A stretch of 62,118 nt of DNA, the filler included, from Choristocarpus tenellus KU-1152 (lineage: Eukaryota > Protista > Phaeophyceae): the NCBI GenBank assembly GCA_964200185.2. It is 7 parts of 7 records of this genome, joined end to end, with 100 filler letters (N's around TTAATTAATTAA, not from the genome) between each part and the next. Parts side by side here need not be neighbours in the genome. Positions count along the whole stretch, not along the records: positions 26,784 to 56,017 come from CAXNAD020000111.1; 6 more parts are not named here. One strand, written 5' to 3'. The position numbers and the translations under genes are program-made. Positions 26,784-55,830 of this stretch are shown one piece after another. The notes below the pieces were generated by a model. The model had not been told where the DNA came from, did no database searches, and worked only from the letters and a program-made list of their open reading frames with translations. The stretch's first letter is position 1. Every line of letters begins with the position of its first letter.

Positions 26784-26892
26784 AAATAAATGAACACTAA
26801 CAACCAGTGCAGTGCACCAATCAACAGTCAGTACAAGCTGGTAGATGTGTATCATATCAACAAGAAACAAATGAGTAGCCTATGTTTTAACA
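26784..26892. mobile_element. Partial LTR end (same family as solo LTR 48233-48936)
   Basis: Ends in CAAATGAGTAGCCTATGTTTTAACA; a further end is at ~32150-32315. Confidence 0.7.
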
Positions 26893-27074: not shown

Positions 27075-27334
27075 GAGTGAAAGTATCTTGGAGGGAACGA
27101 GGTTTGCCCTGTTTGTCCATTTAAACCTTGACTTCCCAAGGGTTTTGTTGTGACATTTTACCTACTTGAAAATGTTTCGGAGCAGGTAAAATGTATACTT
27201 TATGAAAAGTTGTGTCCGGAACATGGATATTGACACTTCTTGACAAACACGATAGCCAAAATTACATCAAAATCGCAACATTGGCTTTTGGCCCCCAAAT
27301 GGACGCGGTTCTACCCTCTACGATGCATTGACTC
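27075..27334 (+). mobile_element. MITE family B copy (260 bp)
   Basis: GAGTGAAAGTATCTTGGAGGG...CCCTCTACGATGCATTGACTC; 4-bp TSD TTAC. Confidence 0.9.
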
Positions 27335-27743: not shown

Positions 27744-29582
27744 CTTCCTCTGTGCCATAAGTCTGTTCCGGGTTGTCCATAACTTTTAAAGACGACGAAA
27801 TCCATTTCTGAAAGAAGCTTAGGAATCCGTGACGAATTTCTGGTTAGGGTCAGCTCTTTTTATTATTATTACTCCCCACCCATCACAATTTTATCAGCCA
27901 CAGAAAAAGCCTCCATGTCTAGTTTCGGCGTATTTTCAAGCTCACCAGACAACTGCCTCTTCCTTACCCCTGTGTGCTCCACACCGAAGTCATTCCCCCC
28001 TTTGTATCTAAATAATTGACTGTGCACCACAAAAAGGAGCTACCAAGCTCTCTGAATTGAGGTTTCATCATACTCCTCACACTCCTTCTTAATGACCTTC
28101 ACCATCTCCTCCACGGACCCAAACCGCTCCCTCATCACCCACCATTTCAAAGACCTGAAGAAGCCCAGGACCATGATGTTGAGGTCGGCAGAGTTGGATG
28201 ACTGCGTCACAAGCCTGATCGACCAGCTCTCCGTCTTCCCCGCTCCTGACAAAAATGACCCAAAGTATCTGGGAGGGGGGGGTGGTTTACACCAGGGTGT
28301 CCATTTGGATCAAAATCAGAAAAATTGCATTTACAGTATCCATCCAACGTATGCAACCAAATTACCCAAAAATCGCGACATGAAAAGTTGACCCCAAATG
28401 GACAGCCGCCACCCTCCTCTACATACTTTGAGCCTGTTCTGTTAGTCCATACATATTTTACCGTAACTGTCCGACAGAGTTGGAAGAGCCTAATCGAACA
28501 GTTACTCCTCCGTGTACCACTTCCTGTACCACAAACTGTCTAAAGTACAGTCCTGCTCATACACATCCCCCTTTTCATGGTTCTTGCTTGTCCTGTCTGC
28601 CGTTTTTAGAGCACACAAACGCCATACACCAAGCTTTCCATTAAAGATGTGAGCCGAATCTGGGTGGACGTTGGCTGCAATGACCATGGTTTTGTGGATA
28701 TGACTCTTGTGCTGCACAGTAGGGGACCCTGGAAGGTCGCTATTATCCTCATACGGAAATACGCTAACCCTTTTCCCCATTAGCCATCACGTAAAACCAG
28801 GTTTCATCCACATGGATTGCTTTTGCTATGGAGGAGTACACACCACGTTTGCAGTCCACTTGATCGCAAACAAAGTCTATTCTCCATACCTTTTGCCACG
28901 ATTTAAGCTTGGATTTGATCCAGCGGCGATTCAGCATGGTCCCCATATCATCCAACCACTTGTTTATGGTACTCGTGCTAAAATTCAACCCCTTGATGGT
29001 CATCTTCATTGTCACCTGACGCAATGTGGATGACTGATTATCGGAGTTGATATTATGTATTGCAGTCATCTTGGTCGGTGTGGGGTCTGAAGGCTGCCCA
29101 CCACGTGCCGCCACCCCTAGGTCAAGCGTGTGACCACGGGTGAGCTGATCGGCGACATTCCCAGAGCCTTCGCATGTAACGCTCGGATACTCCAAATTCC
29201 GCTGCAAGGGCCGGCCCAACGTGGCGTGGCAGTTTATGCTCACCAGGGACCATCGCGACGGCGTGCCGCACTGCAAGCGCAACCCTGATATTCAGGGACA
29301 CTTGGGCACCCTTCCTATGCGGGGGGGTCAAGGGGGAGGTTGTCATGCCGATATTCTGAACCTGGACATGCCCAGTTCTTGCCTCAAAATCACCCCAAAA
29401 GATCCCTACTTTGACCGCTTGAAGCACCTCGAGCTTGTACCTGATGATCCTCGACGCCTACCTTATCTGAAAGCTGAGAATGTCAACCCGATTTCATTCT
29501 GTGGGGTTATCGTTCGATTCGGCACCGTTCTCGCTCGGCGAGCCCAGATATTTTGCAGCACAAACTTATGGCACAGAGGGAG
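27744..29582 (-). mobile_element. Tc1/mariner DD39D-type transposon, both TIRs present, transposase decayed
   Basis: TIRs CTTCCTCTGTGCCATAAGTCTGT / ACAAACTTATGGCACAGAGGGAG|TA; motifs HVDETWFY, KSHIHKTM, FNGKLGVW and QSSNSADLNIMVLGFF. Confidence 0.88.
28257..28434 (+). mobile_element. MITE family A copy inside the mariner transposase
   Basis: GACCCAAAGTATCTGGG...ACATACTTTGAGCC; no TSD visible (AAT vs TGT), consistent with a flanking deletion. Confidence 0.85.
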
Positions 29583-32372: not shown

Positions 32373-32629
32373 GAGTGAAAGTATCTTGGAGGGTACGACT
32401 TTTGCCCTGTTTGTCCATTTGGGACTTGGCTTCCCATGGATGTTTTAGTTACATTTTCCTACTCCAAAATGTTTTGGAGTAGGTAGAATGTCTACTTAAT
32501 GAAAAGGTGTGTCCGGACAAGGATATTGACACTTCCTAACAAACACGATCGCGAAAATTACATCAAAATCGCAACACTGGATTTTGGCCCCCAAATGGAC
32601 GCGGTTCTATCCTCTAAGATACTTGGCTC
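32373..32629 (+). mobile_element. MITE family B copy
   Basis: TIRs present; TSD GGTA. Confidence 0.9.
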
Positions 32630-32769: not shown

Positions 32770-33605
32770 CAAATACACACAATCGAATCACAACCTCGTG
32801 TAATCAGAGGTAAACTAATACGCCAGGATTGTCACCTACGACGTTGTTAACAAGGGCTACCATAAATGAGGACGTTACGTGACTTTCGATTTCATGCTTG
32901 AACGGCAGTCACGATCCTCAGATGTTGCAAGCATTTTCTCCTCTGACTATATGGTGTTCACTGCCTCGTTATAGGTCACAGAGACTAGATAACATGGGCT
33001 GCTTCCAAGTGAAAGCATCTTAGAGGGTAAGAGTTTTGCCCTGGTTATCCATTTGGGGCTTGGCTTCCCACGAGTTTTTTTATGACATTATCCTACTCCG
33101 AAAAAATTCAGTAGGAACAATGTATACGTTGTGAAAAGGTGTGTTCAAAACAAGGATATTGACACTTCACAAAAACACAACACCCAAAATTACATCAAAA
33201 TCGCAACATTGGATTTTGGGCCCCAAACGGACGCGACCCTACCCTCTAAGATTCTTTGACTCTTCCTTCTTTCCTCTTTACTTTCAAGAAACACGTGATC
33301 TACATTCCCGTGAGCATCAAATACAAACAATCGGATCACAACCTCGTGTAATCAGAAGTACACTAGTACACCAGGACTTGTCACGTACGATGTTGTTGAT
33401 AAGGGCTACCATAAAATGAGGACATTGCGTGACTTTCGATTTCATGCTTGAGTGGCAGTCATGATCCTCAGATGCTGCAAGCATTTTCTCCTCTGGTTAT
33501 ATGATATTCCCTGTCTCGTTATAGGTCGCAGAAACTAGATAACATGGGCTGTTTCCTCCTTTTCTTTTCTTTCAAGGAACACATGGTCCACATTCCCGTG
33601 AGACT
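32770..33605. repeat. ~290-bp tandem duplication; first unit carries a MITE B
   Basis: 32781-33006 aligns with 33329-33556. Confidence 0.85.
33007..33262 (+). mobile_element. MITE family B copy
   Basis: TIRs present; TSD TTCC; empty paralogous site at ~33551-33560. Confidence 0.9.
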
Positions 33606-36600: not shown

Positions 36601-37714
36601 GGAGTACCTAGTTAGCCGGCAAAATGTCGGCAGAGCTTGACTTTCTTGGGTTGTTGGCATCATCACCCACGTGTATATGAAAAATTACTGATCAAAGTAG
36701 AGGTTTTTTAGACCAAGAAGTGACGCTTATTGCTGGATTGCTTCCTCCACCTTACTTTTTTTTACTTGTCATAGCCCTCTTGCCCTACGAGCCTCCCTCT
36801 TTTGTTCTAATGGTAAACTGTTGCTGTGTTTCTTCAAGTTACCTCAAATTGTTATTTCACCTCACCTCCATTCAGATACAGAAATAAATGTCCTACGAGC
36901 CTCAGGAGTATTTTTACGAGGGGGTCACATAATAGCAATTAGTGAATGTTGCAAGCAACCCCCTTCCTCAGTTATCTGGACAAGAAAGTACACTAAATGA
37001 GCAATTCAGTAAGGTTCTTGGGGTCATAGCCAAATGATATTTTCCAATGTAGAGGGTGGGCGATAGTGTGACGCCCCCAACAGCATGAGCGGCATGTGCA
37101 AACTCTGATTGGGAGGACGCAAAACGATAAATTTTTCAAAAAATATATATTTATCTTCATTAGCAGCCTAAAGCAACAAAGCACATACATATACATATAT
37201 TTCTGACCTTTTCTCTCACAGTCTACCACAGCATACATACAAAATATACTTTCTGCTGTACTACCACTCTCTACTAGCAAGTGCACTCAAAAACTAGGTA
37301 CCTCTCTTGGTTGATGTCCACTAAATATATATACTAAAGACTCGGACACACTGAGCTAAGAATATTTTGCTTGATGTGTCAAGATAAAATGATAAATTAA
37401 ATAAGGGTGAAGATTGCATACATACACACTCCTCTCTAGCTCAACCAAAGCGAGTATGAACCAAACAAAATACTCAACGAACTATACACGCAGTGAATAT
37501 CAACATTAAGAAAGGATTACTGTGTAACAGAAATATGATCGAAATCCCTAAAAATCAGTCAACACGCTCAGAATGTCTTACTTGGTCAAGGTCTACTCAA
37601 CACACACCAGTCTCTCCTAAGTTTATTGGCCGCTCAAGTACAGGCAAGGCTGACCATCTGTGACCCTGCACTCTCAAAGTTCAAAATGGAGAATCCATCC
37701 TCACACGACACATC

Positions 37715-40700
37715 CTAGACGACACATCTCTTGTTGGAGCAGCTCATGCCGTCGCAGCAGTGCCTGGATTGTGAGCATGTAGGTCAACAAAATTCGATGA
37801 GTATACTACAGATGTCAATAGTGGATACAAGGATGTGGTGGGCATACTATGCTGCTCGCTACACTCTGTGCACAGGGCACTCTAAGTGTGATTGGAAATT
37901 CGTTTTGAGGACAACATAAGACTCAACTGAGAACGCCCAATGTAATCATGATTGGCATGACCAGACATTTTTGAAAGGAATTCAAGCCAAATATTGAAGG
38001 CTAGAGAGCTGTGAATGGCGACATCGTACCAGTCTTTCTTGCACTTCTTTCCCATCTTGTTGCAGCACCTTCCTGCCCTGCACTTTGCCTTCTTGTTTTT
38101 GTTGGTGTCATGGCAACACTGCTTCTTCGAGGTACATGTTCCATTGCCCAGAGGGATGCACATGTCAGTATCAAGACCTGGTATTTCAAGGGATGGGAGG
38201 TTATGTCTAACTTGAGTAACACTGTAAAGTGGGCTCATGTAGTGACTGCACAATGTGATGAGGGATCGGTGGACAGGTATCTCTCAGTTACATGCAGTGG
38301 TGAAGGCTTGTCCAAAAGAACCTCATTCCACATTGAAACACGGTCAAAAGACTCAAGATAACAGTAAAAGACAGTATTTTGCTCATACCACAGAGGCAAA
38401 TATTTCCCAAAGCACATAGTCCTGTACTCGGAGCTCCATGGTTGTTCCTACAATATAGTGAACTTGGTGCTCAGCCGCGTGGTAATATGGGAACAAGGCA
38501 GACACCTGAGCGTAAAATACAGGATCATCTCCAGGAGATGTTAATGAAGTTCCTAGGCATTGACGTGTATATGACAAAGGCACTTTAGCGAGGAGCACTT
38601 GCAACTCAAAACACATATCACATCATGTTTCTTCTTAGTCATCACCTGGCTCATCTGTGCATTCATATCCTGTGGTGCCTGGGGTGCACACTTGAGAGCC
38701 ACACATATTGGATATAATGACGCTGTAGTTCGAGTAGTCAATAAGCTCACATCCTGCATCACAACAAAGTGGTGGTGGCATGGCGCTCGTTGTTGTATCG
38801 GTGGCAGACAAAAAATATGGACTCCGTGCCCTTGATTCCCATAACAAAGGTAGAAAAGCTACCAAATATAACACAGTGCTGTAGTGGAAGAATAGTGTTC
38901 GATGAAGAACGTTGGGACTCACCGCATGTTCCCGTCTCACTGCCATTTTCTGGCCAGAATACCTTTGGGCTGCGAAAAAAGCATCGATGATCGAGGATGG
39001 GACAACATGTGACGTCAAGAAAAATTGTAAGATAATGCACGGAAACGTGGAAGGTTGTATATGAGCCTTTAACTATCAGGGAAAAAACATTCTTGACTGA
39101 TTTTCGAAGAAACCACAGTGGTGTACTGCCTTGGCATCCATCTGCAAAGAAAAACTCACCCATTCACATCAGGTCTGCATTGAAGGTTGAGGTTTCCGTC
39201 AAACTGTCCACCAAGAAGGCTATCCCAGCCATGTCCGACAGATGCAATGGCACAGGGAAGTTCAGAGAGTTGACATCATTATATATATTTGATTTACGTA
39301 ATAATAATGTACTCAAGGTTTCTATTTTTCTTGTTCACCATTGAAGGGCAGGGGGAGGTAGATATTGCCGAAGTGACAGCAAGACAAGATGACAAATGGT
39401 TCCTCATTAGCAAGTACACATGGAGGCACTACACTAAATCACAATGGGTCCATACCACTTTGCTGCAAGATCGGGGAGTTAGAAATACATAAAAAGCATA
39501 GAAATACCATGTAGTTCCCTGACAAAAGAGATTGACCTTGCCAGCGATTTGGTTGGACTACCAGTTTGCATCTTGCCCTAAAACCCAGGTATATACTCTT
39601 GATATGGTCACTCACAGTGTGCCAAGAGCAGGTAAGTCAGCAAAAATCCCCTTTGGCAGTGTCGTCAAAGCGTTTTGATGGAGGTATCTGGAAAGGTATG
39701 GTTGCACAACGGGGAGCACCATAGCAACAAAATAGCAGGCGTTCCAGGCACAGGACAAGGAGACGGGGTATTTGTATATCTTCCACAGGTTAGCATCATT
39801 TACTGCACCAACGGGTTCGCAGTCTCTTCTACTTAGGGGGCAAGCAGAGGACACAGGAACTAGTGGAGTAAGTCCTTAGGAAGAAATGCAGGTAGATAAG
39901 CACGCAATATGCAATGCCACTCACAGAGCTTCAAGCTTCAGCAGACCCTCAAACACTCCATTGGGAAGGTGGGTCAGGGCGTTGCTGTGCAGAAACCTTT
40001 ATGGAAGGGTGGTGTGAGGTAAGAATGAAACGTCACATGAGGTATGCATCTGCAGTACAATCTCGTAGATGTTCAAAAGCACACCAAGGTTGGGACGTGA
40101 CGACCCAACTGGTTGCGTACGGGTTTAATGCGAAAAAGACGTTTTTAGGTACAGCAAAATGCATCTGATGTCTATCTATTCTACAGGATCTCACCTCAAC
40201 AAAGTGTCCATATAATATCAATATGCTAAAGACACAAGTTCCAAAAGCAAAAGAACAGATTTGTGTCTGTTCGATTATCAATAAGTGCCATACTCACAAT
40301 TCATGTAGCTCCCCCAGACCATAGAATATCTCTTTTGGAACTGTCGACAGGTGGTTATGGTCGATCTCCCTGATGGCATGCACAGGGTAGGGGTTCATTT
40401 TTTTTGTCATTCTAGCTTCACCTGGAACAAGTGAGATGGGCAGTTCATACCAACCACGAGTACCAGCTAGGCAACAGTAGTGTTCTGTGTTGTTGAGGGT
40501 AGCCAGATCATTGCCTGTCATCATGTCCAACCGCTTGACCAAGGGTGCTCTGGGACTCAACATTGAGACCATGTGCTATCAAAGGATCGATTTTGGACGT
40601 GCAATGAGAAAGCTATGATGTCAGGTCAGTGAATTTTGCAACACCTTCTCTGCAAGCGCTACCCATGAGTGTCTTGCACCAGGCATGCGCAAGATCATTT

Positions 40701-41581
40701 TGGTGTTGCAAATGGTCTCAAAACTGGATAAGTCCTCACAGAAACCAACCGATCTAATAACATGTCACAATACCGTACAGCACTCACAACTGCTTCAAGC
40801 TGCTCATACCCAGGAATAACCCTTCTTTTAAATTTCTGAGCTTGTTTTTGTGTAGATACCTGGTAGGCAGAGAAAATGGATCAAACCAGACATCAACATG
40901 GTGAGTGGGAAACGTGTCACATTGTTGGTTCATGAATTCTCTGCTGATGTGAATAGGATCTTCCACTACTGTGCCATCATGCAGCGCAGACAGAATGTAT
41001 TGCCCTAGGCTTCAGAGGTGGGACAACAGCAATCCATTCTGTGCTTCATTTTTTGTTTAGGATGTAACTCCCGAACACGAGATATTTCGGGGGTTTGCGC
41101 GTTAAATCTGAAGCAACTATTCACTTATCACATAGGGAAATACTGAGCATCTCGTTTTGTTTCAGCACTGGTCGAAACAAATCATGATCACTTACAACTT
41201 TGTGATGCTCGCCACCCCCCGAGTTTCAATGCAGGCCCTGATGGCATCCATATCATCATCTTCTAGTCCACAGGTGGATAGATCACTTGCAATAACGGAG
41301 AAAAGTGGAAGATTACATTTGATAGAATCTGCAAGTATTGTATTTGAGGTGTATGGAATTCGGTTGAAAGGCTGTGAAGTTTCGGTTATTTTGAAGAATA
41401 AACTTTCATGAAATTGATCGTAACAGCATCCAAACAACCCTAACAATACATCACGGGCAATTATGCCTTACTTAGGCATGATTCAACTATGAGAAAGAGG
41501 CGATAGAAGTTACAGATAATACCTATACTTACAGGATGGTATCAGTAGCTGAACCACACCGGTAGTTGCTATCCTCTACAG
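37715..41581 (-). CDS. LRR protein with C-terminal tandem knottin-like domains; exons 41581-41533, 41285-41196, 40859-40788, 40369-40298, 39996-39925, 39687-39616, 39219-39160, 38969-38923, 38753-38646, 38177-38030, 37763-37715; 5' exon(s) not resolved
   Basis: All ten introns GT-AG and phase-consistent. N-cap (CGSATDTILDLSTCGL..C), four 24-aa LRRs (LxxNxLxxLPxGxFxGLxxL), C-cap (GNLNLQC..TGTCGC..CG..CTPG..GYEC), then a 12-Cys Lys-rich tail to a TAG stop. Confidence 0.88.
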
Positions 41582-44539
41582 CTGTGAGACAACCTGCTTG
41601 ATCAGATCCATCGACAGGTAAGGGAGAAGACGAGTATAGGGAAGGATTTGTTTCGTATGCTTGGTAATATTTTGTCGCAATCATTGGCTACAGGAGGTAT
41701 GTCCATCTGGTCAGAACAAGATATGGAGGACACCAACTTCGTCACATGGGGAAAGATGGATATTCAGCACAAAAGGTGATAAGATGTTTGTAGCTTGTCC
41801 TGTGCTGAGCTCCTGCGCATGGTATGCAAGCAGTAAATATGTGGGGATTTTTTCATTGTAGATACCGAGACCAGCTGATAGGTTGTTCAGTACAAGACCT
41901 CTGCCATACACCCAATTCATTAGGTAGGTAGTACTAGTATAGACCTATCGAATGTAGACTTAATTGATTCGAATCCAGTATTACCGCACGAGTTTTCGGA
42001 GAAGCGATACCAACAAGACTGTGATTTGGCACACAACTGGAGAATGCATGTATCCGACCATTCTGAGGTGCGACTGTTACTGGCCAAGACTGGACGGGGA
42101 TGTACCAAGGGCAGCTACCTCTACCGCTGCAGCCTTACCGGGGAGGAATATTAGTCATCCGCTTCAAACATACCTTTAATGTCGTGTGCGAACCCGCCAA
42201 GTGTTTGTAGGGTGATCGCAAGAAATCCCAAAATTCTTGCGAGAGTCATGGTACTCCAATCGTGGTAACGGAGATACGTACTCTTTTCTTGGCTGTGCCC
42301 CTTCTTTGCTGTACAGCAAGTGTAGCGAGTGATTGATCCTTCGAGTGGTGGTTCGCTAGTCGGACAGGTGACGACGAAGGACAGGATGATGACGAAGAGT
42401 TCTTAAGTGATGCGTTTTTTTGTCGTTAGGTAGACTGAACTTGTGACGTTGACAGTGACAGGCATGTGAAGACACCAATAACAACATAAGATCTTTCGAT
42501 ACGAATGGTATGGAAGAAGGATCTGAGCACTTGGAGGTGTAAGCTTGAACGATGAAAGGCATGCTGTGACATTATGGATGTGGTCGGTCATTTCAAGGTA
42601 CTCACCTCTCCGAAAAACGTAGCACAAAAACAACAGGTCTTGTTTGTTCAACACCAACAGGACGATAGCAAATACACCAGAAGGAGTGTAGTGGTAGGTA
42701 ATTAAATGGTACGTTCTGTGAAGGGGAGGAATGCAATTTGTGGTGGAGGAATGATGCCTTATCCCTCCATATGCCAGTGAGCTGGGAGAAGCTAACTTCT
42801 TACCGTTGAAATTCGGAATTTTAAGCGGGGAAAAGATATTCCTACTCTTCTAAAATGCTGAAATAGATTCAGTCGTTATTATTCCATAGATTTTGAAACA
42901 GCTAGTCGTGGGACTGTTTGCTGAAGTGGAACAGTGGTATCTAAATGTTGTATAAAATTCAGATGGCAGAAGATGACCCAGCATAATTGGTTGGACATAT
43001 CCCCACTAATTGTATACTCTCTCTCACTAGTCACGTCAATCTTGAGTTTCCCATTTCATTAATTTCAGGACAACAGTCCATCTGTTTATCCTCCACCTTG
43101 AAGGAGTCAGGAAACCGGTCCAGCCAGGTTTCGATCGTGCAACCTCTGGTAGTGTAAACCATTTGAGATATCACTGTTTCACTGCAGGGCAAAAGAGGCG
43201 AGTAGAGTAGTAGTCTAATCGTAGGATTAGGTTGATGTGTTGACTTATCCCCCAATGGGTTCGACGATGATCACACCACTCCTCTGTTTCCTCCCTCGAA
43301 TCCTTGTGGTGTAGACATGTCGGAATCCCTTTCCAAGGAAGCATGTCACATTGTTTGTCTGAGTCTTCCACGTCTTTGTGTCTTGTAGGTATAGATGAGG
43401 ACTGACGTTGATGGGGTTGAGGGTCCCAGTATTTGTAGAGGGAGAAAGTCCTCAATTTTGTACCTGAGTGATGAGGACACTGCAACGCTTGCACAGCATA
43501 CACTACATAGTACAGGATTGAATAGTCTGCATTGGCACAGTGTATTTTAAAAAATATATTTGTGTAATGGAAATATTGTAGTACCATACATACATCACCC
43601 ACAAGTAGTAGGTTGTGTGAAGGGTGAGGAGAATGCCGTTTGTAACAATAGTTGATACCTACATTAGGTTGGGGAAAATATTATTCGTAGCCTTTTCAAC
43701 TGAAAATAACCTTCAACGATACAGTTCCCCACCATCTAGAGGACAAGATGTTAAACACATTTTCGATGCACCAGTTATATATAGGAGATTGAAATAGAAA
43801 CCAGACAACATATTAATAACCAGACCCCCATAACGTATCCATAATACCATACATATATAACCACAACCCTAATCTAACCACAACCTGCCGTAGCCCTACC
43901 CCCCCAGAATCATTACGAAAATAATACACGAGGGATATGTATGTATATTACTATTGGGGTTTGGTTGATACCACATCACTTGTTTCCTCTTTCAATTTTC
44001 CTCATATATAATACAATAACAAATTTCACCTCAGGATTTACTAATATTTTCATTACCATTTTTAGATGTATGAATACTAATATTAAAAAAATTGTCGCCA
44101 TTATGTTCATCACCATCACATTGCTGCGAGGGATCATGCAATCATTATTGAGAACATCGTCCAAAAAAGAAGGCAACATACACACACTATTTGAGAAATG
44201 GAGAATAGAGGTAAGGGCTAAAAAGAAAAACAAACAGGTGCGAGAAAAAAGAATATAAACCACCCAAAAAACATACGGGGAAAAGACCAGAAATTGAATA
44301 CAAGAGAAGTCAACCCCCCAAAAATAAATGTCATTCAGCAGACAAACTGATGCAACTAACAGTGGTGTTGGTGGTATTGGTGGTGTGCAACTGACAGAGC
44401 AAATAGGAGCCTCTGCTTCCCCACGGTACGTTGATACTCTCTTGATTATAACAAGATCCTTGAAGATGGTCGGGTCAGAAGTGAACTTGCCATACTTAAC
44501 ACTGCAGTGAAGAAGATGTTGAACAGGATTGGAGCAAGA

Positions 44540-44959: not shown

Positions 44960-46415
44960 AGGTATTATTATGGAAGGAACTCCCATCCTCTTCAATATCT
45001 TCTTCACTGCTTGATGCTAAGTGTAGGGGTTAAAGGACCTCACCTCTAACCCGACTATCCGCAAGGAAGGACGTTGCTGTCATCAAGAGTTGATACGAAT
45101 AACCAGCTCAGAGGAGGAGGAACAATAGGGCGTGGGATAAGACCTGAGCGACTCTTTTGGTGCATGCTTTTGTGCTGGTGATGCGGGGATTGTCTCTAAG
45201 GTCCAACAAGGATATTGGACCAATACGATGACGACGATTGTGAAATTGCCCGGATCCTTCAGTCTGACCGTGTCGGCGTTAAATACGGAGACCGTGTGTC
45301 TCCAGCCTCCAAATTATGTAGAAGATACTTCTTTGTGGATTATGTTGCCGATACAGTATAGACATCACTGGTAGAATACACAGTAGGGTGGAGATTCAGA
45401 AAAGGACATGCCATTGCATTGTTGTGTTGTCAGGACATTGGGTTTGTGTACTTGATATATGGCATCATGCTCTAGATGTCTTGATTGACTGATGTCTAGT
45501 GATTAGTTCTAGATATATACCGATCATGCTGAAGACAAGTAAATTAATTATCCGTGGGTAGTTGGTGCGGACGATTGCACACCCAACGACATTAACAAAA
45601 CAATGGTAGATGCGACCAGTTGTGAGCTCCACGAGTTCAGTCAACGAATTTGAGACCATGACCCCCTTGTATCATTAATTGCTACACAGTAACACTGACC
45701 GAGAATGTCAAAGTATATTAGAGGGTAGCGTCGCGTCCATTTGGGGCCAAGATCAATTGTTGCAATTTGATGTAATTTCGGCTATCATGTTTGTTAGGAG
45801 ATGTCAATATCCTTATTCCAGACACTCCTTTTCATAACGTATACATTTTACCTATTCCAAAACAATTTGGGAGAAGGTAAAATGTCATAAAAAAAAACGT
45901 GGGAAGCCATCTCCAAAATGGACAAACAGGGAAAAACTCGTACCCTCTAAGATACTTTCACTCAGATATTGTCCTATGTCAAGGCTCATCGTAGACAACC
46001 TCATCCTCGACTCCAGAGTGGGATACTACAACAATGAGCCAAAAAAAATGAGAGATAGGCAGGTTTGGACCCTTCTGCGTTCCAAGCCATCTCGCTTACC
46101 CTATGCAATACACTCTTATTCCATTGCTCTATGTGCACAATAGTGTATGCAAAATTGATATTCCCCCTTTCCATACACACAAGGTGACGCCACAATCCCG
46201 CACAGAGGCTCTTTCTGCGATTTTAAAAAATGGCATCTTTTTGCCCTTTATCGGGATCCTTAAAATGCAACCCTGCCTACCTATCGTGCCAATCCAGTTA
46301 CTGAACCAGAGATACAAACAGACTGAAAAATTTGATCACCCTGGAGACACCATCGATGATGAAGCCGCAATCATTGCCAAGGTCAGCCAGAGGATTCAGA
46401 AAGCTTGGGAGTTGT
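44960..46415 (+). mobile_element. Discontinuous RTE-like LINE RT fragments (44960-45320; ~46290-46415)
   Basis: Degenerate WCML.A.DAGIVS, MTTIV..FSLTVS..TETVCL; QRYKQTEKF..I..RIQKAW. Confidence 0.65.
45705..45963 (-). mobile_element. MITE family B copy
   Basis: Reverse orientation; left terminus mutated, TSD ambiguous. Confidence 0.85.
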
Positions 46416-46618
46416 GAGTCAAAGCATTTAGTAGGGTAGGGCCGCGTCCTCTTGGAGTCCAATATCCAATGGTAATATTTTGATGTAATTTTGGATACCG
46501 TGTTTGTTAGGAAGTGTCAATATCCTTGTTCCGGACACACCTTTCATAGTCGTACACATTTTACCTACTCCGAGATGTTTCGGAGTAGGTAACTGTCCTA
46601 AAAAAACCCGTGGGAAGC
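46416..46618 (-). mobile_element. MITE family B copy truncated at a Copia LTR
   Basis: GAGTCAAAGCATTT... homology stops exactly at the LTR start TG (46619). Confidence 0.85.
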
Positions 46619-47941
46619 TGTGCAGATTGAGACCGCTGTTTGTCTCAGAATGGAAGAAGAGAGAAGAAAGAGATGGCAGCTTCGCACGATTCCCATTAGC
46701 TGAATATGATTACATGGTTGAAAAGAAGAGTGTCCTTGTGGGATGTCTTCTTATTGCTTATGTATCATTATTTGCGCCTCAGATGTAAGTCAACGGCTAT
46801 GTCAGATAAGTTTAATTGCAACGCCAAATCCAAAACATAATCCAGATGTACAATTTCATTAGTTACATCACATGGACTCAATCCAATGCCATATTCTCAC
46901 ATACACATAATAGGGTACACCTTACAATTGCCCTATTTTGCACACTCCCCCATGAGAGTGCAGGCCATGAAGGGTTGCTGGAACTCTCAAACCAACAAAA
47001 AAATACATATCCATAGTCAGAACGAAATTAATCTACAGCCTTGTCAGCACTGCCTGTCTGAATGGTCCCGAATGCTCTCGGTTACGTATTACCGTAGCAT
47101 GTATCTTATCCTGCACACTTCCCCATGAAGTCCATGGTGTATGCTCATCTGTCTCAAACGTCGCTTGGGCTGAGGTCCCCAACTTGGCCTCTTGAGAAAG
47201 TCAGGTGTACCAACACAGTATAATGTACGATCATGTCCCTTGATGATCCCTCATTTGGTGTATGGGTGAAAATTTGAACCAGCTCCCCTCTGCTGTTTCT
47301 CTGGGTGGATGTAGCACTCGCTCCTCCAGGCCCAAAGCCTTTCATAGTTGAAGACTTTCCCCGTCAGACACTCACATTCTTCCATTGAATAGGAGTAGAT
47401 TTCCCGTGATGCTCTGTCTCGATACAGGATCGTTGACCCAGTCCGAGTCCCCATACCCTGTGAGCCGCCCTTTGTTGTCTCTCTCTCTCCTTCAGTAGGA
47501 TAGTGTATCCCCACATTGGTGGAGCCTGTAACATAACGCAGTACATGTTGTAGTCCCTTCCAGTGCCACCTGCGTGGTGTGGAAGCAGTGTGATCCAGTT
47601 CTCTCACAGAGCTGCTGCTGTCACCAGCACTGTCCATATGATATCATTCACTGGGTTGGACGCGTTGAGGTAATTCCACACCCTCTTGTTGAGTGAAGAC
47701 CTGTGCCACCAACCTGGCCTTGAACCGTTCAATGGTCCCCTCAGCTGTTGGCTTTATCTTAAATTCGGACTTAGTCTTGACAGTATTTCTTCCCTGTGGC
47801 AATACCTCTCCATGAATGTCCCCTTCGTCCATTGTTGCTCTATCTTCTCCATCGCCACTTGCCATCCTCGTGCATCAGGTACCGCAAGTGCCTCTGATAT
47901 TGAAGATGGTTCTTGGTGGTCTGGAGCAGATACTACTTACT

Positions 47942-48119
47942 GATCCAAAGTATCTGGGGGGGAGGGGGATCTACACCAGGGTGTCCATTTGGGCCATAAC
48001 CAGGAAACGTGCACCTACATTATCCATCCGATGCATGTAACCAAATCACCCAATAATCGCAAGATGAAAAAATTGGCTCCAAATGGACAACCACCACCCC
48101 CTCCCAGATACTTTGAGCC
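47942..48119 (+). mobile_element. MITE family A copy
   Basis: TSD ACT; empty site TACTTACTCCCC seen in the sister repeat at 49046-49057. Confidence 0.92.
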
Positions 48120-48232
48120 ACTCCCTAGACTTACCAGTCTTGTGCAGACAGCCCTTTGCCGACAATCTGCCTCGCCAGGGTGCCTCTGATATTGAAGATG
48201 GTTCTGGATGGTCTGGAGTAGATAGTACTTTC

Positions 48233-48936
48233 TATTAAAACCTGAATCGAATGCATCATACTTCTGAGTAAAATGGGTAGTCTGCGTTGCGAAGAGAAGT
48301 CATTGTGCTGGAAAGCAGCGATGAATAAATTGCGTAGTCTGTGTTATGAAGGGAAGTCATAGTGCGGCAATGTACCGATGTATTTGTTCTGTTGTAACTG
48401 AGGTCATTGCTCCCTCAGTCAAGAATGATGTGATGTGAATTCAGTGTTTTTTCTTGAGATACTCAACGAAAGAAGTCCATGCTCTGTGGAGAGGCTTGTT
48501 ACCTTGGCCGACAAGGGTTTCCGTGGAGGGTTTAACTCTGAATATATAGCATCCACGCGTTCATTAGGTACAACTATTGTAGAGTGAGGTTGGTGCATTA
48601 TGAGGGGGCAATGGCAGCCAAGAAATAAACAATAATCAACAATTAACGTACAACTGTGATCTTCTAACCTGCTAAGAAGAAGAGAAAGAAAATGAAAAAG
48701 GCAAACAACAGAACAACCTTGAATCATTATGTGATGCATCTCGAGTGGCGCATACTATTCCTGTGTGTGGGATACGGAGCGACTGTTCTGTACTGCAGTG
48801 TTCTGATGGTAATTGATGCGCTGATGATGAACTAGTGACAGTAACGACCAGTGCGTAACGGGCCAATCAACGGTCAGTATTGATTGGTGATACTGTATCT
48901 TATGAAGAAAGCAAATGAGTAGCCTATGTTTTAACA
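48233..48936. mobile_element. Solo LTR (704 bp) of a second LTR family
   Basis: Termini TATTAAAA...TTTTAACA; 5-bp TSD CTTTC (48228-48232/48937-48941). Confidence 0.85.
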
Positions 48937-51080
48937 CTTTCTCCACAGACTTACCAGTCTTGTGCAGGCAGCCCTTTGCCGACAACCTGCCTTGCTAGGG
49001 TGCCTCTGATATTGAAGGTGGTTCTTGAAGGTCTGGAGTAGGTAGTACTTACTCCCCAGACTTACCAGTCTTGTGCAGACAGCCCTTTCCCGATAACCTT
49101 CCCTGCGAGGGTCATCAAGGTCTGCCATTGTGGGAACCACCTTGGAAAGAGCAACGCCTTACCCTACCAGGGTTGGTTGCCTGAATCCTTCTCCCTTAGG
49201 AGTTAGAGGCTTAACTCAGCCCTCTTACAGGCGAGAGGGGGGTTTTGGAGATGTGCCATCGCAGGAAGCACTTCACATGTAGCTGCCCCTTTCTCTTTTC
49301 GTGGACGTTTAGTTTACTGCTCCTGCTGATATATCTGCTCCCCTTTTGGAAGGTACAGCGATTGCTTTCCTCACTCTGTAAGCAAGAATCTTGGGGTCTC
49401 CAATCGATGCACATGCCCCGTCAGGGACAATTGTGGTGACGACTGCTCCAGGTCCATCTGGCGCAGGCTTGGTCACAGTTGCAGCTCTGGCTGCATTGCC
49501 CCGATTGTCTCCATCATCTTGTCACAGGGTCTATACCAGTGCTCAATCTTCGGCATGGCATACCAGGTACCCAAACTATATCCTGAAGTATCAACCTTGA
49601 CCTCCAGTTCTTGCCTGTCGTTGTCAATAGTACCATATCCCATGTCTCCTTAGCCTCCAGCTTCCCATTTTTGTCGAAGGCGCAGGTCCACTTTGTTCGT
49701 ATAGTGATGATGAGTCTATTGCCCGTTTCAGCTCCTTGTAGGCTTATCCGGTCTTGTCATGAGCTGCACGGGGATCTCGTCCTCCGAGGGTCCTCTGAAA
49801 GGAATATATGTTCAGCATGCGTCCTTGATGCCTAATTGCCTGCTTCAGCACCTGGTAAGTTGTACCAGGACTTTTCAAGCTGGACTACGAAAACCGCACA
49901 GTGCAGCTTCTGGAGGCGTCCTTCCAAGGTGATGATCTGGACGGGGACCTTGTCCTCCGCACGTCCTCCATTGACTCTTTCTAATTCCATCCATGGTCCT
50001 GTGTTGTCTGGGTTCTCTTTTTCGACTGTGACCACGGTTGCTGCCGCGGACCCTCTTGTCTGATGAGTTGCACAGGGATCTCGTCCTCTGCGGGTCCTCC
50101 ATAGACTATTTCTCATTGTTCTCGTGCACCCTTCGTTCCTGTTCTGTTGGTGTCTCCATGAATTCAGGGACCACGCATTTTCGCCGTTGAATGTCGTACA
50201 GACCCTCTCCGCCGGCGTAACCCACGACAGATAATCCCAATATTGTCCAGATCTCCACTGACCGTCCTGGAGCTCCATTCCAGGTAGAGAACTTCTTCAT
50301 ATGATTTCCGTATCGTTGAGGCTCATAAACTGTGCAGTTAAACTTGGAAAGTATTCATAACCTGTGCAGATTTAGATTGCTGTTTGTGTCGATATGGAAG
50401 AAGAGAGAAGAGAGAAGAAGATAGAGATGGGAGCCTCACACGATTCCCCATTACTAAATACGACCACATGGTTAAAAACAAGAGTGACCTTGTGGGGTAT
50501 CTTCTTATTGCTTGTTTTATTTATTGTTGTGCCTCATACGTAACTCATGCTTAACTGCAATATTAAATCTCATAACTCACATGTACCATCTAATTAGTTA
50601 CATCAAATGGACTCAATCCAACGCCATAATCTCACATACACAAAACAGGGTACACCTTACGGTTGTCCTATTTTTGGACAAGTTCCTCTCGCTTTTTGGC
50701 AAATGATGCATTTCCCCTACTCCTTTTTTCTTCCACCTTCCCTCTCAGGTGTAGATATACAACATTTTCCATTATACTCGACAGTTTTGAAAATTCCCCC
50801 GATTTCTCCAATTTTATCTGTGGACTGGTCGTGAAGTTCTGAGGTAACTTGTCCTTGATCCCGAGTCCATGAATTCTCCTCCTTCTCGTAGCAGGGTCCC
50901 AGTGCTCAATATTCGGCATGGCATACCAGGTACCCAAGTATCACCCTTGACTCCTCGTTCTTGCTCGTTATCAATAATACCATATCACCTATCTCCTTAG
51001 CCCCCAGCTTCCCATTATTGCCGAAAGTGCAGGTTGGCTTGTTGCTTGTGTGCTCACCAGATCCTCTCTCTGTGGCATGA

Positions 51081-53454: not shown

Positions 53455-53711
53455 GAGTCAAAGTACGTTAGAGGGTAGAGCCGTGTCCGTTTGGGGGCCA
53501 AAATCCGATGTTGGGATTTGATGTAATTTTGGCTATTGTATTTGTTAGGAGGTGTCAGTATCCTTGTTCTGGACACACCTTTTCATATCATACCCAATTT
53601 ACCTTCTCCGAAATGTTTCGGAGTAGGTAAAATGCAAAAAAAAGACGTGGGAAGCCAAGCCCAAAACGGACAAACAGATCAAAACTCGCACCCTCTAAGA
53701 TAATTTCACTC
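53455..53711 (-). mobile_element. MITE family B copy
   Basis: TIRs present; TSD TGTG. Confidence 0.9.
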
Positions 53712-54185
53712 TGTGTCCACTCATGCAAACGAGTAGAGTTGAGTATCCTCCAATCCACCAACATATTATATGTAGTCTATTTCCAAGGATTGATCAACCT
53801 GGTAAACACGAGATGCCAAGTCAGAGCTGGTCGTGAACAGGTTAGCTGAAATTTGTTAACAGTTATCTCATCTCTTCACAAAACGATAGACTATACCCAT
53901 CTATGACAAAATGACACACAAAAACGATTGGTCTAAACGAGATGGACAGCCTATATAAAGGATTATGGTATGTGGGTACCACGAGATCTGGGCAAGACAT
54001 ACTAGTCTTAAGAAACACACAAATGAAGAATTGGCGAGGATCTGTACCGCACATATATACAACAGTCTCTTTACTGAAACGATAGGTTACAATATTATGA
54101 CAATGCATGATATACAGACTATGCAAAGGAGTATGGTAACAGTAAATACGAATTCTCAAGTCAACACTATGTAGGACGAGAATTT

Positions 54186-55830
54186 TTACTGGTTAACCAA
54201 TTCATTTACTGCACGATAGGCCGTAATCATTTCACGGCATTGTGGGATCTGTTCTGTTCTTTTGTGAAGATCGCAAGACGGTCCATAGCCACAAAGACGA
54301 AGGCGAGAGATAACATTTAGTGGACGAACGACTACCAGGACCAGGTCCATGTCCAAGAATGCTATCAATAGTGTATTGGCCACTAACAGGTTGAGAGATT
54401 TGATGGTCTACATTCGGTAATGGTAATGGTTTTCCCAGAAACAAATACTCCAGTTCATTCAAATCTGGTGTGGGAGGTTGGACTTGAGGATATAGTAACG
54501 CTTCATTCTACCCAGATGAACAGAAAATTGACGTGGGTTTCCAGGTAAAGCTAACCTGTACGCGATGGTTGATACCTTAGAATGCACTTCATACGGACCC
54601 CTCCAAGGGTGAAGTAACTTCGGATTCGGACCATCAGCACTCTCATGGGGCCTACGGACTAGAACTTGATCACAGGGTACGAAAAACGGGAAACACGAGA
54701 CGTTGGTTGGCACGCTCCTGATTTTAAACGTGTTCATGGAGATCACGATGTGCCAACTTAAATGCAAGCTGTAAGTTATCTTTGGTTTGCTGAGTAAAAT
54801 CTTCAGTAGTGACATCTGAATCAGCATTAGACGAACCAAGGATAATATCAACAGGTAAACGAGCTTGTCTTCCAAACAGAAGGAAAAACAGGGGCTCATG
54901 CAACTTTGCACTGAAAGCTGTGTTTGGACTAACTCTACGAAAGGCAGTAATAACGATGCCCAGTTATCCTCGGCAACGGAGATATACATTATTGCTAGCA
55001 TAGAATGCAATGTACCATGTACTCTCTCTAACACAGAATTTCCTTGGAGGTGATACGGTGTGGTTTTGGTTTTCTTGTAACCAAAGACAGACTGCAACTC
55101 TGCAACAATACTGTTTTCAAATGCGGTAGCTTGATCGGAATGTAACAACTCGGGTGGGTCGAAAATTGAAAGTACACGTTCTACCAGCATACGAGCAATT
55201 GTTGCGACTTCTTTATTTGGAACAGGACTCAGCACAACAAAACGAGAGAGGTGATCAATGGCAGACAACACATACGAGCACATCACACAATTTGTTCCTG
55301 GGGAACATGTTTTGTACTCTACCAAATCATTAGCAACTCGTTATAATAGTCTGTCAACGGGCATATGGCCAGTGGCAAGCGTAGCTTTGTTATGGTAGTC
55401 TTACGCGCTTGGCATGCTTGACAATCCCGACACCATGTACGAACGTCGCTGTTGAATGTTGGCCACCAATACGAGTCTCTAACCTTATCAAAAGTGGGTT
55501 TGAAACCTACATGGCCTCCAGACAATGCAGGTCATGGCAACCATGGAGTACAAGACGGACTAACAAAGGAGGAACGACCAACTGGTCTCTAAACATGCTC
55601 CTCTTACGAAGATGGCCTGGTAAATATGAACGATATAGTAAGCCATATTGAAGGAAAAAATACGACATAGACATCGTTGATTCCTTTTCAGGTGGTTCCT
55701 TTTGAACACATGTGGTTAATGCACGACTACATTTACGCATATTACGACAGATAGGTGCTAGCACTGAAGCAACGGATTTTTGCTGTTCCTCAACTTGAAA
55801 ATACGAGATAGAGTGTGAGGTATAACATTT
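54186..55830 (-). mobile_element. Ty3/Gypsy integrase with probable chromodomain, frameshifted
   Basis: HHCC zinc region (CHD..GGHVG..YWWP..CQACQ); core (AIDHLSRF, HSDQ, PYHLQGNSVLERVH); GPY motif (WRGPY); YTIDSILGH..GYGP. Confidence 0.9.

Follow-up and report, generated by a model that had tools for sequence, protein, structure and literature searches.

A putative secreted leucine-rich repeat protein with a cationic, double six-cysteine tail in the brown alga Choristocarpus tenellus

Gene structure and the public protein model

The window analyzed here is a 62,118-nucleotide stretch of DNA from the brown alga Choristocarpus tenellus KU-1152 (assembly GCA_964200185.2), made of parts of seven records joined end to end, in which positions 26,784 to 56,017 are contig CAXNAD020000111.1 (29,234 bases). 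On the minus strand of this contig piece, at 42249..37715, we found a gene of 12 exons for a leucine-rich repeat (LRR) protein that ends in a cysteine-rich, cationic tail. All 11 introns have GT-AG borders, and the joined exons form a single open frame with one terminal stop. Exon 11, used as the query of an exhaustive protein search, was 100% identical over residues 245-292 to CAM9128064.1, which is annotated as an "unnamed protein product" of C. tenellus and comes from the same contig and assembly. The 12 exons joined by their coordinates reproduce this 308-residue protein letter for letter. In the order of translation, the features of the gene are:

42174..42249, minus strand: exon 1 (76 nt), with the ATG at 42249; residues 1-25, a signal-peptide-like N-terminus; donor GTATGT
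41533..41593, minus strand: exon 2, N-terminal cap with Cys27 and Cys38; alternative in-frame acceptor at 41581
41196..41285, minus strand: exon 3 (90 nt), an acidic, irregular first repeat or cap with Cys51 and Cys64
40788..40859, minus strand: LRR exon (72 nt), phase 2 introns on both sides, type II register
40298..40369, minus strand: LRR exon (72 nt), phase 2 introns on both sides
39925..39996, minus strand: LRR exon (72 nt), phase 2 introns on both sides, type II register
39616..39687, minus strand: LRR exon (72 nt), phase 2 introns on both sides, type II register
39160..39219, minus strand: exon 8 (60 nt), last partial repeat or C-terminal cap, with Cys186
38923..38969, minus strand: exon 9 (47 nt), spacer with an N-glycosylation sequon at residue 200 and Cys207
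38646..38753, minus strand: exon 10 (108 nt), spacer with Cys209, 225, 230 and 239; no Pfam match
38065..38160, minus strand: tail module 1, residues 250-281, within exon 11 (38177-38030)
38030..38064, minus strand: first part of tail module 2, residues 282-293 with Cys I and II, at the end of exon 11; donor GTACGA
37715..37763, minus strand: exon 12, Cys III-VI of module 2 (residues 294-306), two Val, and the stop TAG at 37717-37715

An initial annotation of this locus, made by hand-splicing, had placed the gene at 37715-41581; its limit at the tail end stands, while at the 5' end the gene runs further upstream, to the ATG at 42249. The two tail peptides it gave are reproduced exactly by translation of exon 11 (38175-38032) and exon 12 (37762-37715), and the junction it drew from 38646 to 38177 is present in the public model, as is that from 38030 to 37763. 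Its acceptor for exon 2, at 41581, was not borne out, since the public model takes 41593 instead. Exon 2 thus has two in-frame AG acceptors 12 nt apart (41593 and 41581); use of the latter would delete four residues including Cys27, leaving an odd number of cysteines, and it may mark a minor isoform or simply be unused. At the other end of the gene, a 14-nt unit is repeated 2.3 times at 37696-37728, running from the final codons through the stop and into the beginning of the 3' untranslated region.

The Phaeoexplorer annotation was produced with Gmove, a program that derives exons solely from protein and transcript alignments. Because this procedure is evidence-based and the tail has no protein relative, the two tail introns most probably rest on transcript alignments, and the gene is probably transcribed. 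We regard it as very probable that the gene is real and has the architecture described here.

Putative signal peptide, LRR body and spacer

Read directly, the N-terminus begins with a short basic segment, followed by a hydrophobic core of 15 residues; with small residues at -3 and -1, cleavage of a signal peptide after Ala21 is likely. Residues 1-25 hold the sole strongly hydrophobic 19-residue window in the protein by hydropathy, and an AlphaFold2 (AF2) model places a helix at 4-20. Secretory entry was judged by inspection and hydropathy, by which the N-terminus is signal-peptide-like; the initial annotation had read the protein as secreted, for which a first exon was missing, and that exon is now found at 42249-42174. 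It had also claimed that no transmembrane segment follows the LRRs, in agreement with the lack of any hydrophobic segment past residue 25. Hydropathy and Pfam likewise found no transmembrane segment, kinase, glycosylphosphatidylinositol-like end or retention signal in the 308 residues. The protein therefore fails as a member of the LRR receptor kinases, having no match to a kinase family, no hydrophobic segment after residue 25 and a stop codon at 37715.

Pfam matched LRR families only (LRR_8, E-value 4.1e-23, residues about 72-176), which upholds the earlier identification as an LRR protein. Among proteins of solved structure, the closest in sequence are "typical" extracellular LRR proteins from animals (best PDB E-value 2.6e-50), namely the acid-labile subunit of the IGF-binding protein complex (ALS), LRRC15, LGR4/5, LRRTM, the Nogo receptor, variable lymphocyte receptors (VLRs) and TLR3. 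Four of the repeats are encoded at one per 72-nt exon, with phase 2 introns on both sides and the register xLxxNxLxxxxxGxxxxxxxLxxL; this type II register is complete in three of the four exons, the fourth lacking only the Gly. In total we count about five to six "typical" 24-residue repeats. When run against both strands of the contig piece, a profile of the four LRR exons matched those four only, with no reshuffled or antisense LRR exons in the introns. Residues 172-248 comprise the last partial repeat and a six-Cys spacer, for which there was no Pfam match and no relative (a word search found only the protein itself), and language-model neighbors were uninformative.

In Ectocarpus, type II LRR exons occur in seven LRR-kinases and eight other loci; relative to the type I exons found in ROCO genes they are offset, and no sign of shuffling is seen in them (Zambounis et al. 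2012, PMC3341825). The Choristocarpus gene resembles these loci in having one 24-residue repeat per 72-nt exon, the same register and no shuffled intron copies. Unlike the Ectocarpus LRR-kinases with such exons, it encodes neither a transmembrane segment nor a kinase and has the cysteine-rich end instead.

The cysteine-rich cationic tail

Residues 250-306 (57 residues) contain 12 Cys arranged as two abutting C-C-CC-C-C modules with zero residues between them. Module 1 (residues 250-281) has the spacing C-x7-C-x5-CC-x10-C-x4-C and eight Lys/Arg to one Asp/Glu; module 2 has C-x6-C-x5-CC-x4-C-x4-C, with Cys at 282, 289, 295, 296, 301 and 306. These spacings (7,5,0,10,4 and then 6,5,0,4,4) are those the initial annotation had given, and its description of the tail as Lys/Arg-rich is likewise correct, the 64-residue tail having 15 Lys/Arg to five Asp/Glu (net +10). 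The remainder of the mature protein has 15 basic to 29 to 31 acidic residues (net about -14 to -16). Module 2 is interrupted by an intron, so the modules do not correspond to units of exon shuffling.

Cysteine density alone was not rare among six-frame windows of the contig piece and is not significant as a chance statistic. A stop-free C..C..CC..C pattern occurs four times in the piece (two in the tail, one antisense to the tail, the rest elsewhere). What lifts the tail above chance is that two complete six-Cys frameworks stand in frame with the LRR exons across canonical introns, together with a clear codon bias. The GC content at third codon positions (GC3) is 0.72 in the tail and 0.49 in the body, intron GC content being 0.43, and tail codons favor AAG over AAA by 10:2 and TGC over TGT by 9:3; this bias supports the coding status of the tail. 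The 22 Cys of the protein fall into even groups, with four in the N-cap, six in the cap and spacer and 12 in the tail.

Predicted fold of the tail

The initial annotation had assigned the tail to the C-C-CC-C-C framework of the inhibitor cystine knot (ICK), and both modules fit it in the order of the six Cys and in loop lengths, which lie in the known range. A full-length AF2 model, made from the single sequence, had a predicted local distance difference test (pLDDT) score of 48 and was too poor for a structure search; it contained hairpins over Cys V and VI in both modules (strands 274-277/280-283 and 300-302/305-307), with residues 281-308 at pLDDT 63-72. Exon 11 modeled alone, again from the single sequence, reached pLDDT 69 and showed the module 1 hairpin again. 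A Foldseek search with this exon 11 model gave 17 rows (best E-value 1.9), mainly knottins, among them omega-atracotoxin-Hv2a, conotoxin GXIA, poecitoxin, squash inhibitors and MCoTI, plus the N-terminal region of Dickkopf protein Dkk4. An independent structural alignment against 48,161 representative chains found 16 with Z of at least 2 (maximum 3.1), about 12 of them knottins; these 16 include the 74-76-residue hexatoxins 2n6r and 6ba3, cysteine-rich domain 1 (CRD1) of Dkk4, draxin, LEAP2 and 6ay7. Language-model neighbors of the tail were theraphotoxins, omega-atracotoxin and Dickkopf_N, with structure rows mostly Dickkopf_N, and these scores serve as leads only. Modeling of the tail with AlphaFold and a Foldseek search had been proposed in the initial annotation as a check of the knot: the resulting lists are dominated by knottins, but each match is below significance (Z no higher than 3.1, E-value no lower than 1.9). 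On balance, the framework and models slightly favor ICK-like modules, each a beta-hairpin carrying Cys V and VI that would be pinned by I-IV, II-V and III-VI disulfides.

Searches for relatives and prior descriptions

The tail matched no Pfam family at E-values up to 10, and its best sequence match in the PDB, to omega-atracotoxin-Hv2a, had an E-value of 0.1, which is not significant. A phmmer search with exon 11 against 1.84 billion representative proteins found no tail relative beyond CAM9128064.1. A second match, to a 2140-residue bacterial protein with Ig-like repeats, was rejected, as only one of eight Cys was aligned and the score was the sum of ten weak repeat matches. A word search with the tail turned up nothing but the protein itself, and one with the whole protein, which covered proteins up to about 540 residues, gave only bacterial LRR proteins of a generic kind. 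Relatives of the tail were also absent from the viral and metagenome contigs scanned, and Rfam gave no match. With the limited reach of a 48-residue query, and with long LRR-kinases outside the word search, distant kin may exist; as judged by these sequence searches, the protein is a single-species orphan of an early-branching brown alga.

A full-text literature search found no description of knottin or cystine-knot modules in brown algal proteins. The initial annotation had called the tailed protein a candidate algal architecture not recognized as described; the source organism is indeed a brown alga, and neither the literature searched nor the sequence searches yielded such a description or a tail relative. 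While secreted LRR proteins are a known theme, the double six-Cys cationic tail appears not to have been described on one before.

Comparison with known cystine-rich systems

With ICK peptides (omega-conotoxins of framework VI/VII, spider toxins and squash trypsin inhibitors) the modules share the framework, compatible loops and a predicted hairpin over Cys V and VI, and such peptides are often highly positive, like the Choristocarpus tail. They differ in having no significant sequence or profile match, in forming the C-terminus of an LRR protein rather than being cut from a prepropeptide, in their brown-algal host and in that their fold is predicted. The two-domain spider knottins U4-hexatoxin-Hi1a (2n6r) and U21-hexatoxin-Hi1a (6ba3) likewise have two tandem cystine-dense units per chain, and the former, our top match, aligns over 46 of the 48 modeled residues (Z 3.1). 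The Choristocarpus units, however, are joined without a linker residue, and the toxins are venom peptides without LRRs; the likeness is too weak to indicate kinship.

A second comparison is with the Dickkopf proteins. Dkk4 CRD1 (PDB 5o57) has a colipase fold of two subdomains, which are described as ICK-like and as products of a duplication, and the disulfides of its C-subdomain, 66-80, 73-85 and 79-90, are of the I-IV, II-V, III-VI type (PMC6078440). The spacing of module 2 is identical to that of Dkk4 Cys 66, 73, 79, 80, 85 and 90 (Cys66-90). "Dickkopf-like" and "knottin-like" therefore overlap, and the view of the initial annotation that a Dickkopf-N-like tail would be a non-knotted one, and so would refute its proposal, rests on a false opposition. 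Taken in its entirety, the tail is not a Dickkopf_N domain, because it has 6+6 Cys where Dkk CRD1 has ten (4+6) and a long tethered loop, and because Dickkopf_N (PF04706) did not match the tail even at an E-value of 10; the structural match to Dkk4 had Z 2.2 and TMq 0.50. The granulin consensus has its twelve Cys as C, C, CC, CC, CC, CC, C, C, and the tail departs from it with C, C, CC, C, CC, C, CC, C, C.

Genomic surroundings

No other gene is called within 10 kb on either side of the LRR gene. A 288-residue open reading frame (ORF) at 54459-55325 on the minus strand, with a retroviral-type integrase core, a Tf2-1-like SH3 domain and an integrase C-terminal domain, is the remnant of a Ty3/gypsy-like retroelement. 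Dispersed repeats of roughly 100-250 nt, 72-91% alike and in both orientations, lie at 27075-27334, 32373-32624, 33008-33262, 45743-45963, 46416-46605 and 53455-53712; this family, which resembles a miniature inverted-repeat transposable element or a short interspersed nuclear element, fills both flanks of the gene and does not occur within it. At 47888-49112, local direct repeats (54-178 nt, 85-91% alike, including a 57-nt unit present twice at 48265-48380) form a cluster that is probably the internal structure of a transposable element. Two further ORFs on the minus strand, at 47251-47637 (128 residues) and 28764-29282 (172 residues), resemble pieces of transposon proteins on visual inspection and had no Pfam match at an E-value of 0.01.

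Discussion

The order of parts in the protein, which from its sequence would be a secreted one, is putative signal peptide, four-Cys N-cap, LRRs, six-Cys cap and spacer, and two abutting six-Cys modules. Of the functions we considered, wall anchoring ranks as the likeliest, followed by a role as effector or ligand, because the tail would be a rigid polycation on an acidic LRR body and the wall is one of alginate and fucan. The brown-algal wall is described as mainly alginates and fucans (PMC6736953). The acidic LRR arc would be the ligand-binding part, and the rigid, protease-resistant polycationic tail (+10) would hold the protein in the polyanionic wall of alginate and sulfated fucan, so that it would serve as a soluble, wall-tethered counterpart of an LRR-kinase ectodomain, acting like plant PGIP or LRX. 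One structural neighbor of the tail, 6ay7, is by its entry title a cartilage-homing cystine-dense peptide, and that title points to cationic cystine-dense peptides homing to a polyanionic matrix. In LRX proteins the LRRs are linked to a distinct C-terminal part that anchors them in the wall, and both PGIP and LRX are held in a wall of anionic polysaccharide. The likeness to plant PGIP and LRR-extensins, as secreted LRR binding modules in an anionic wall, is a functional analogy only, the repeats here being of the "typical" animal-like kind rather than plant-specific and the proposed anchor cationic and cystine-dense rather than an extensin. PGIP has also served as the modeling template for type I LRRs of Ectocarpus (PMC3341825). 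Anchoring by the tail is for us a tentative proposal, and the reading as a whole, a secreted LRR protein with an ICK-like double module and a wall-anchoring role, is our best explanation, held with somewhat less hesitation than the anchoring itself and still short of even odds.

Several observations weigh against this reading, foremost that the ionic strength of seawater screens purely electrostatic binding. The cationic tail could also fold back on the acidic face of the LRRs. With regard to the fold, every structural match is below significance, though the lists agree with one another; the AF2 models are single-sequence ones (pLDDT 48 and 69) in which AF2 may echo the Cys patterns of toxins; and with no homologue there is no support from conservation or covariation. 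The two modules are alike only in Cys and composition, 77% of shuffled versions scoring at least as high as the real pair. Module 1 has a loop 4 of 10 residues, which is long by ICK standards, and it is unusual for two knots to follow each other with a zero-residue linker. Transcript support for the gene is deduced from the annotation method.

The tail might instead be an antimicrobial or channel-blocking cationic knottin, which the LRRs deliver to a bound microbe or which cleavage in the acidic linker before residue 250 sets free. Such a sensor joined to an effector would suit a tail that is strongly cationic, cystine-dense and of amphipathic size, whose nearest weak neighbors in sequence and structure are pore- or channel-active toxins plus the host-defense peptide LEAP2, and the LRR exon type is one common to candidate immune receptors (PMC3341825). 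We nevertheless consider it improbable, as there is no significant similarity, no dibasic processing site or propeptide layout like that of toxin precursors, and, the gene being single, none of the family expansion that effectors usually show. Somewhat less probable again is a ligand or adaptor whose Dickkopf/colipase-style tail docks on an extracellular protein such as a beta-propeller receptor kinase, making the protein a soluble co-receptor or signal. Brown algae possess beta-propeller receptor kinases, and there is a parallel in the Dkk proteins, which bind the beta-propeller domains of LRP5/6 (PMC6078440); in its Cys spacing module 2 matches the C-subdomain of Dkk CRD1, the structural neighbors include draxin and the N-terminal region of Dkk4, and the language-model structure rows are mostly Dickkopf_N. 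Yet the Pfam Dickkopf_N profile goes unmatched even at an E-value of 10, the Cys layout is 6+6 rather than 4+6, and TM-scores are below 0.5.

A further alternative is that the protein is a young lineage-specific chimera or an annotation artifact, with real LRR exons and a Cys-rich end recently exonized in a repeat-rich contig and having no settled function. The protein is an orphan in every search, its gene is the only one called within 10 kb on either side in a 29-kb contig crowded with dispersed repeats and remnants of retroelements, the final intron has a weak donor (GTACGA), and the stop-free C..C..CC..C pattern arises by chance about once or twice per piece. However, the public model is evidence-based (Gmove), the twelve Cys form two complete frameworks with an even Cys count throughout, the GC3 and AAG/TGC codon bias of the tail are strong and unlike the introns, and the gene body is free of the flanking repeats, so that we rate this possibility as quite low. 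We would put at a similarly low level a bolder proposal, that of a brown-algal "recognize and act" protein in which a receptor-kinase-type LRR arc binds a microbial or wall-derived ligand and the attached double cystine knot either kills or blocks as an effector or, as a Dickkopf-like ligand, activates a beta-propeller receptor kinase. If true, this would be an immune or signaling architecture without counterpart in plants or animals, and its cystine-knot modules would be the first reported from Phaeophyceae.

In brown algae, multicellularity, walls and pathogen defense arose independently of plants and animals, and to our knowledge almost nothing is known of the secreted recognition proteins of this group. 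What we describe concerns one gene of one species, with a predicted fold and without relatives. Within that scope, the Choristocarpus protein brings together an LRR module whose exons are of the receptor-kinase type and a free-standing tail that is polycationic and cystine-dense. It would extend knottin-like modules to a lineage without described cases in the literature searched, and it would offer a concrete, easily expressed handle on how proteins are retained or act within the alginate and fucan wall.

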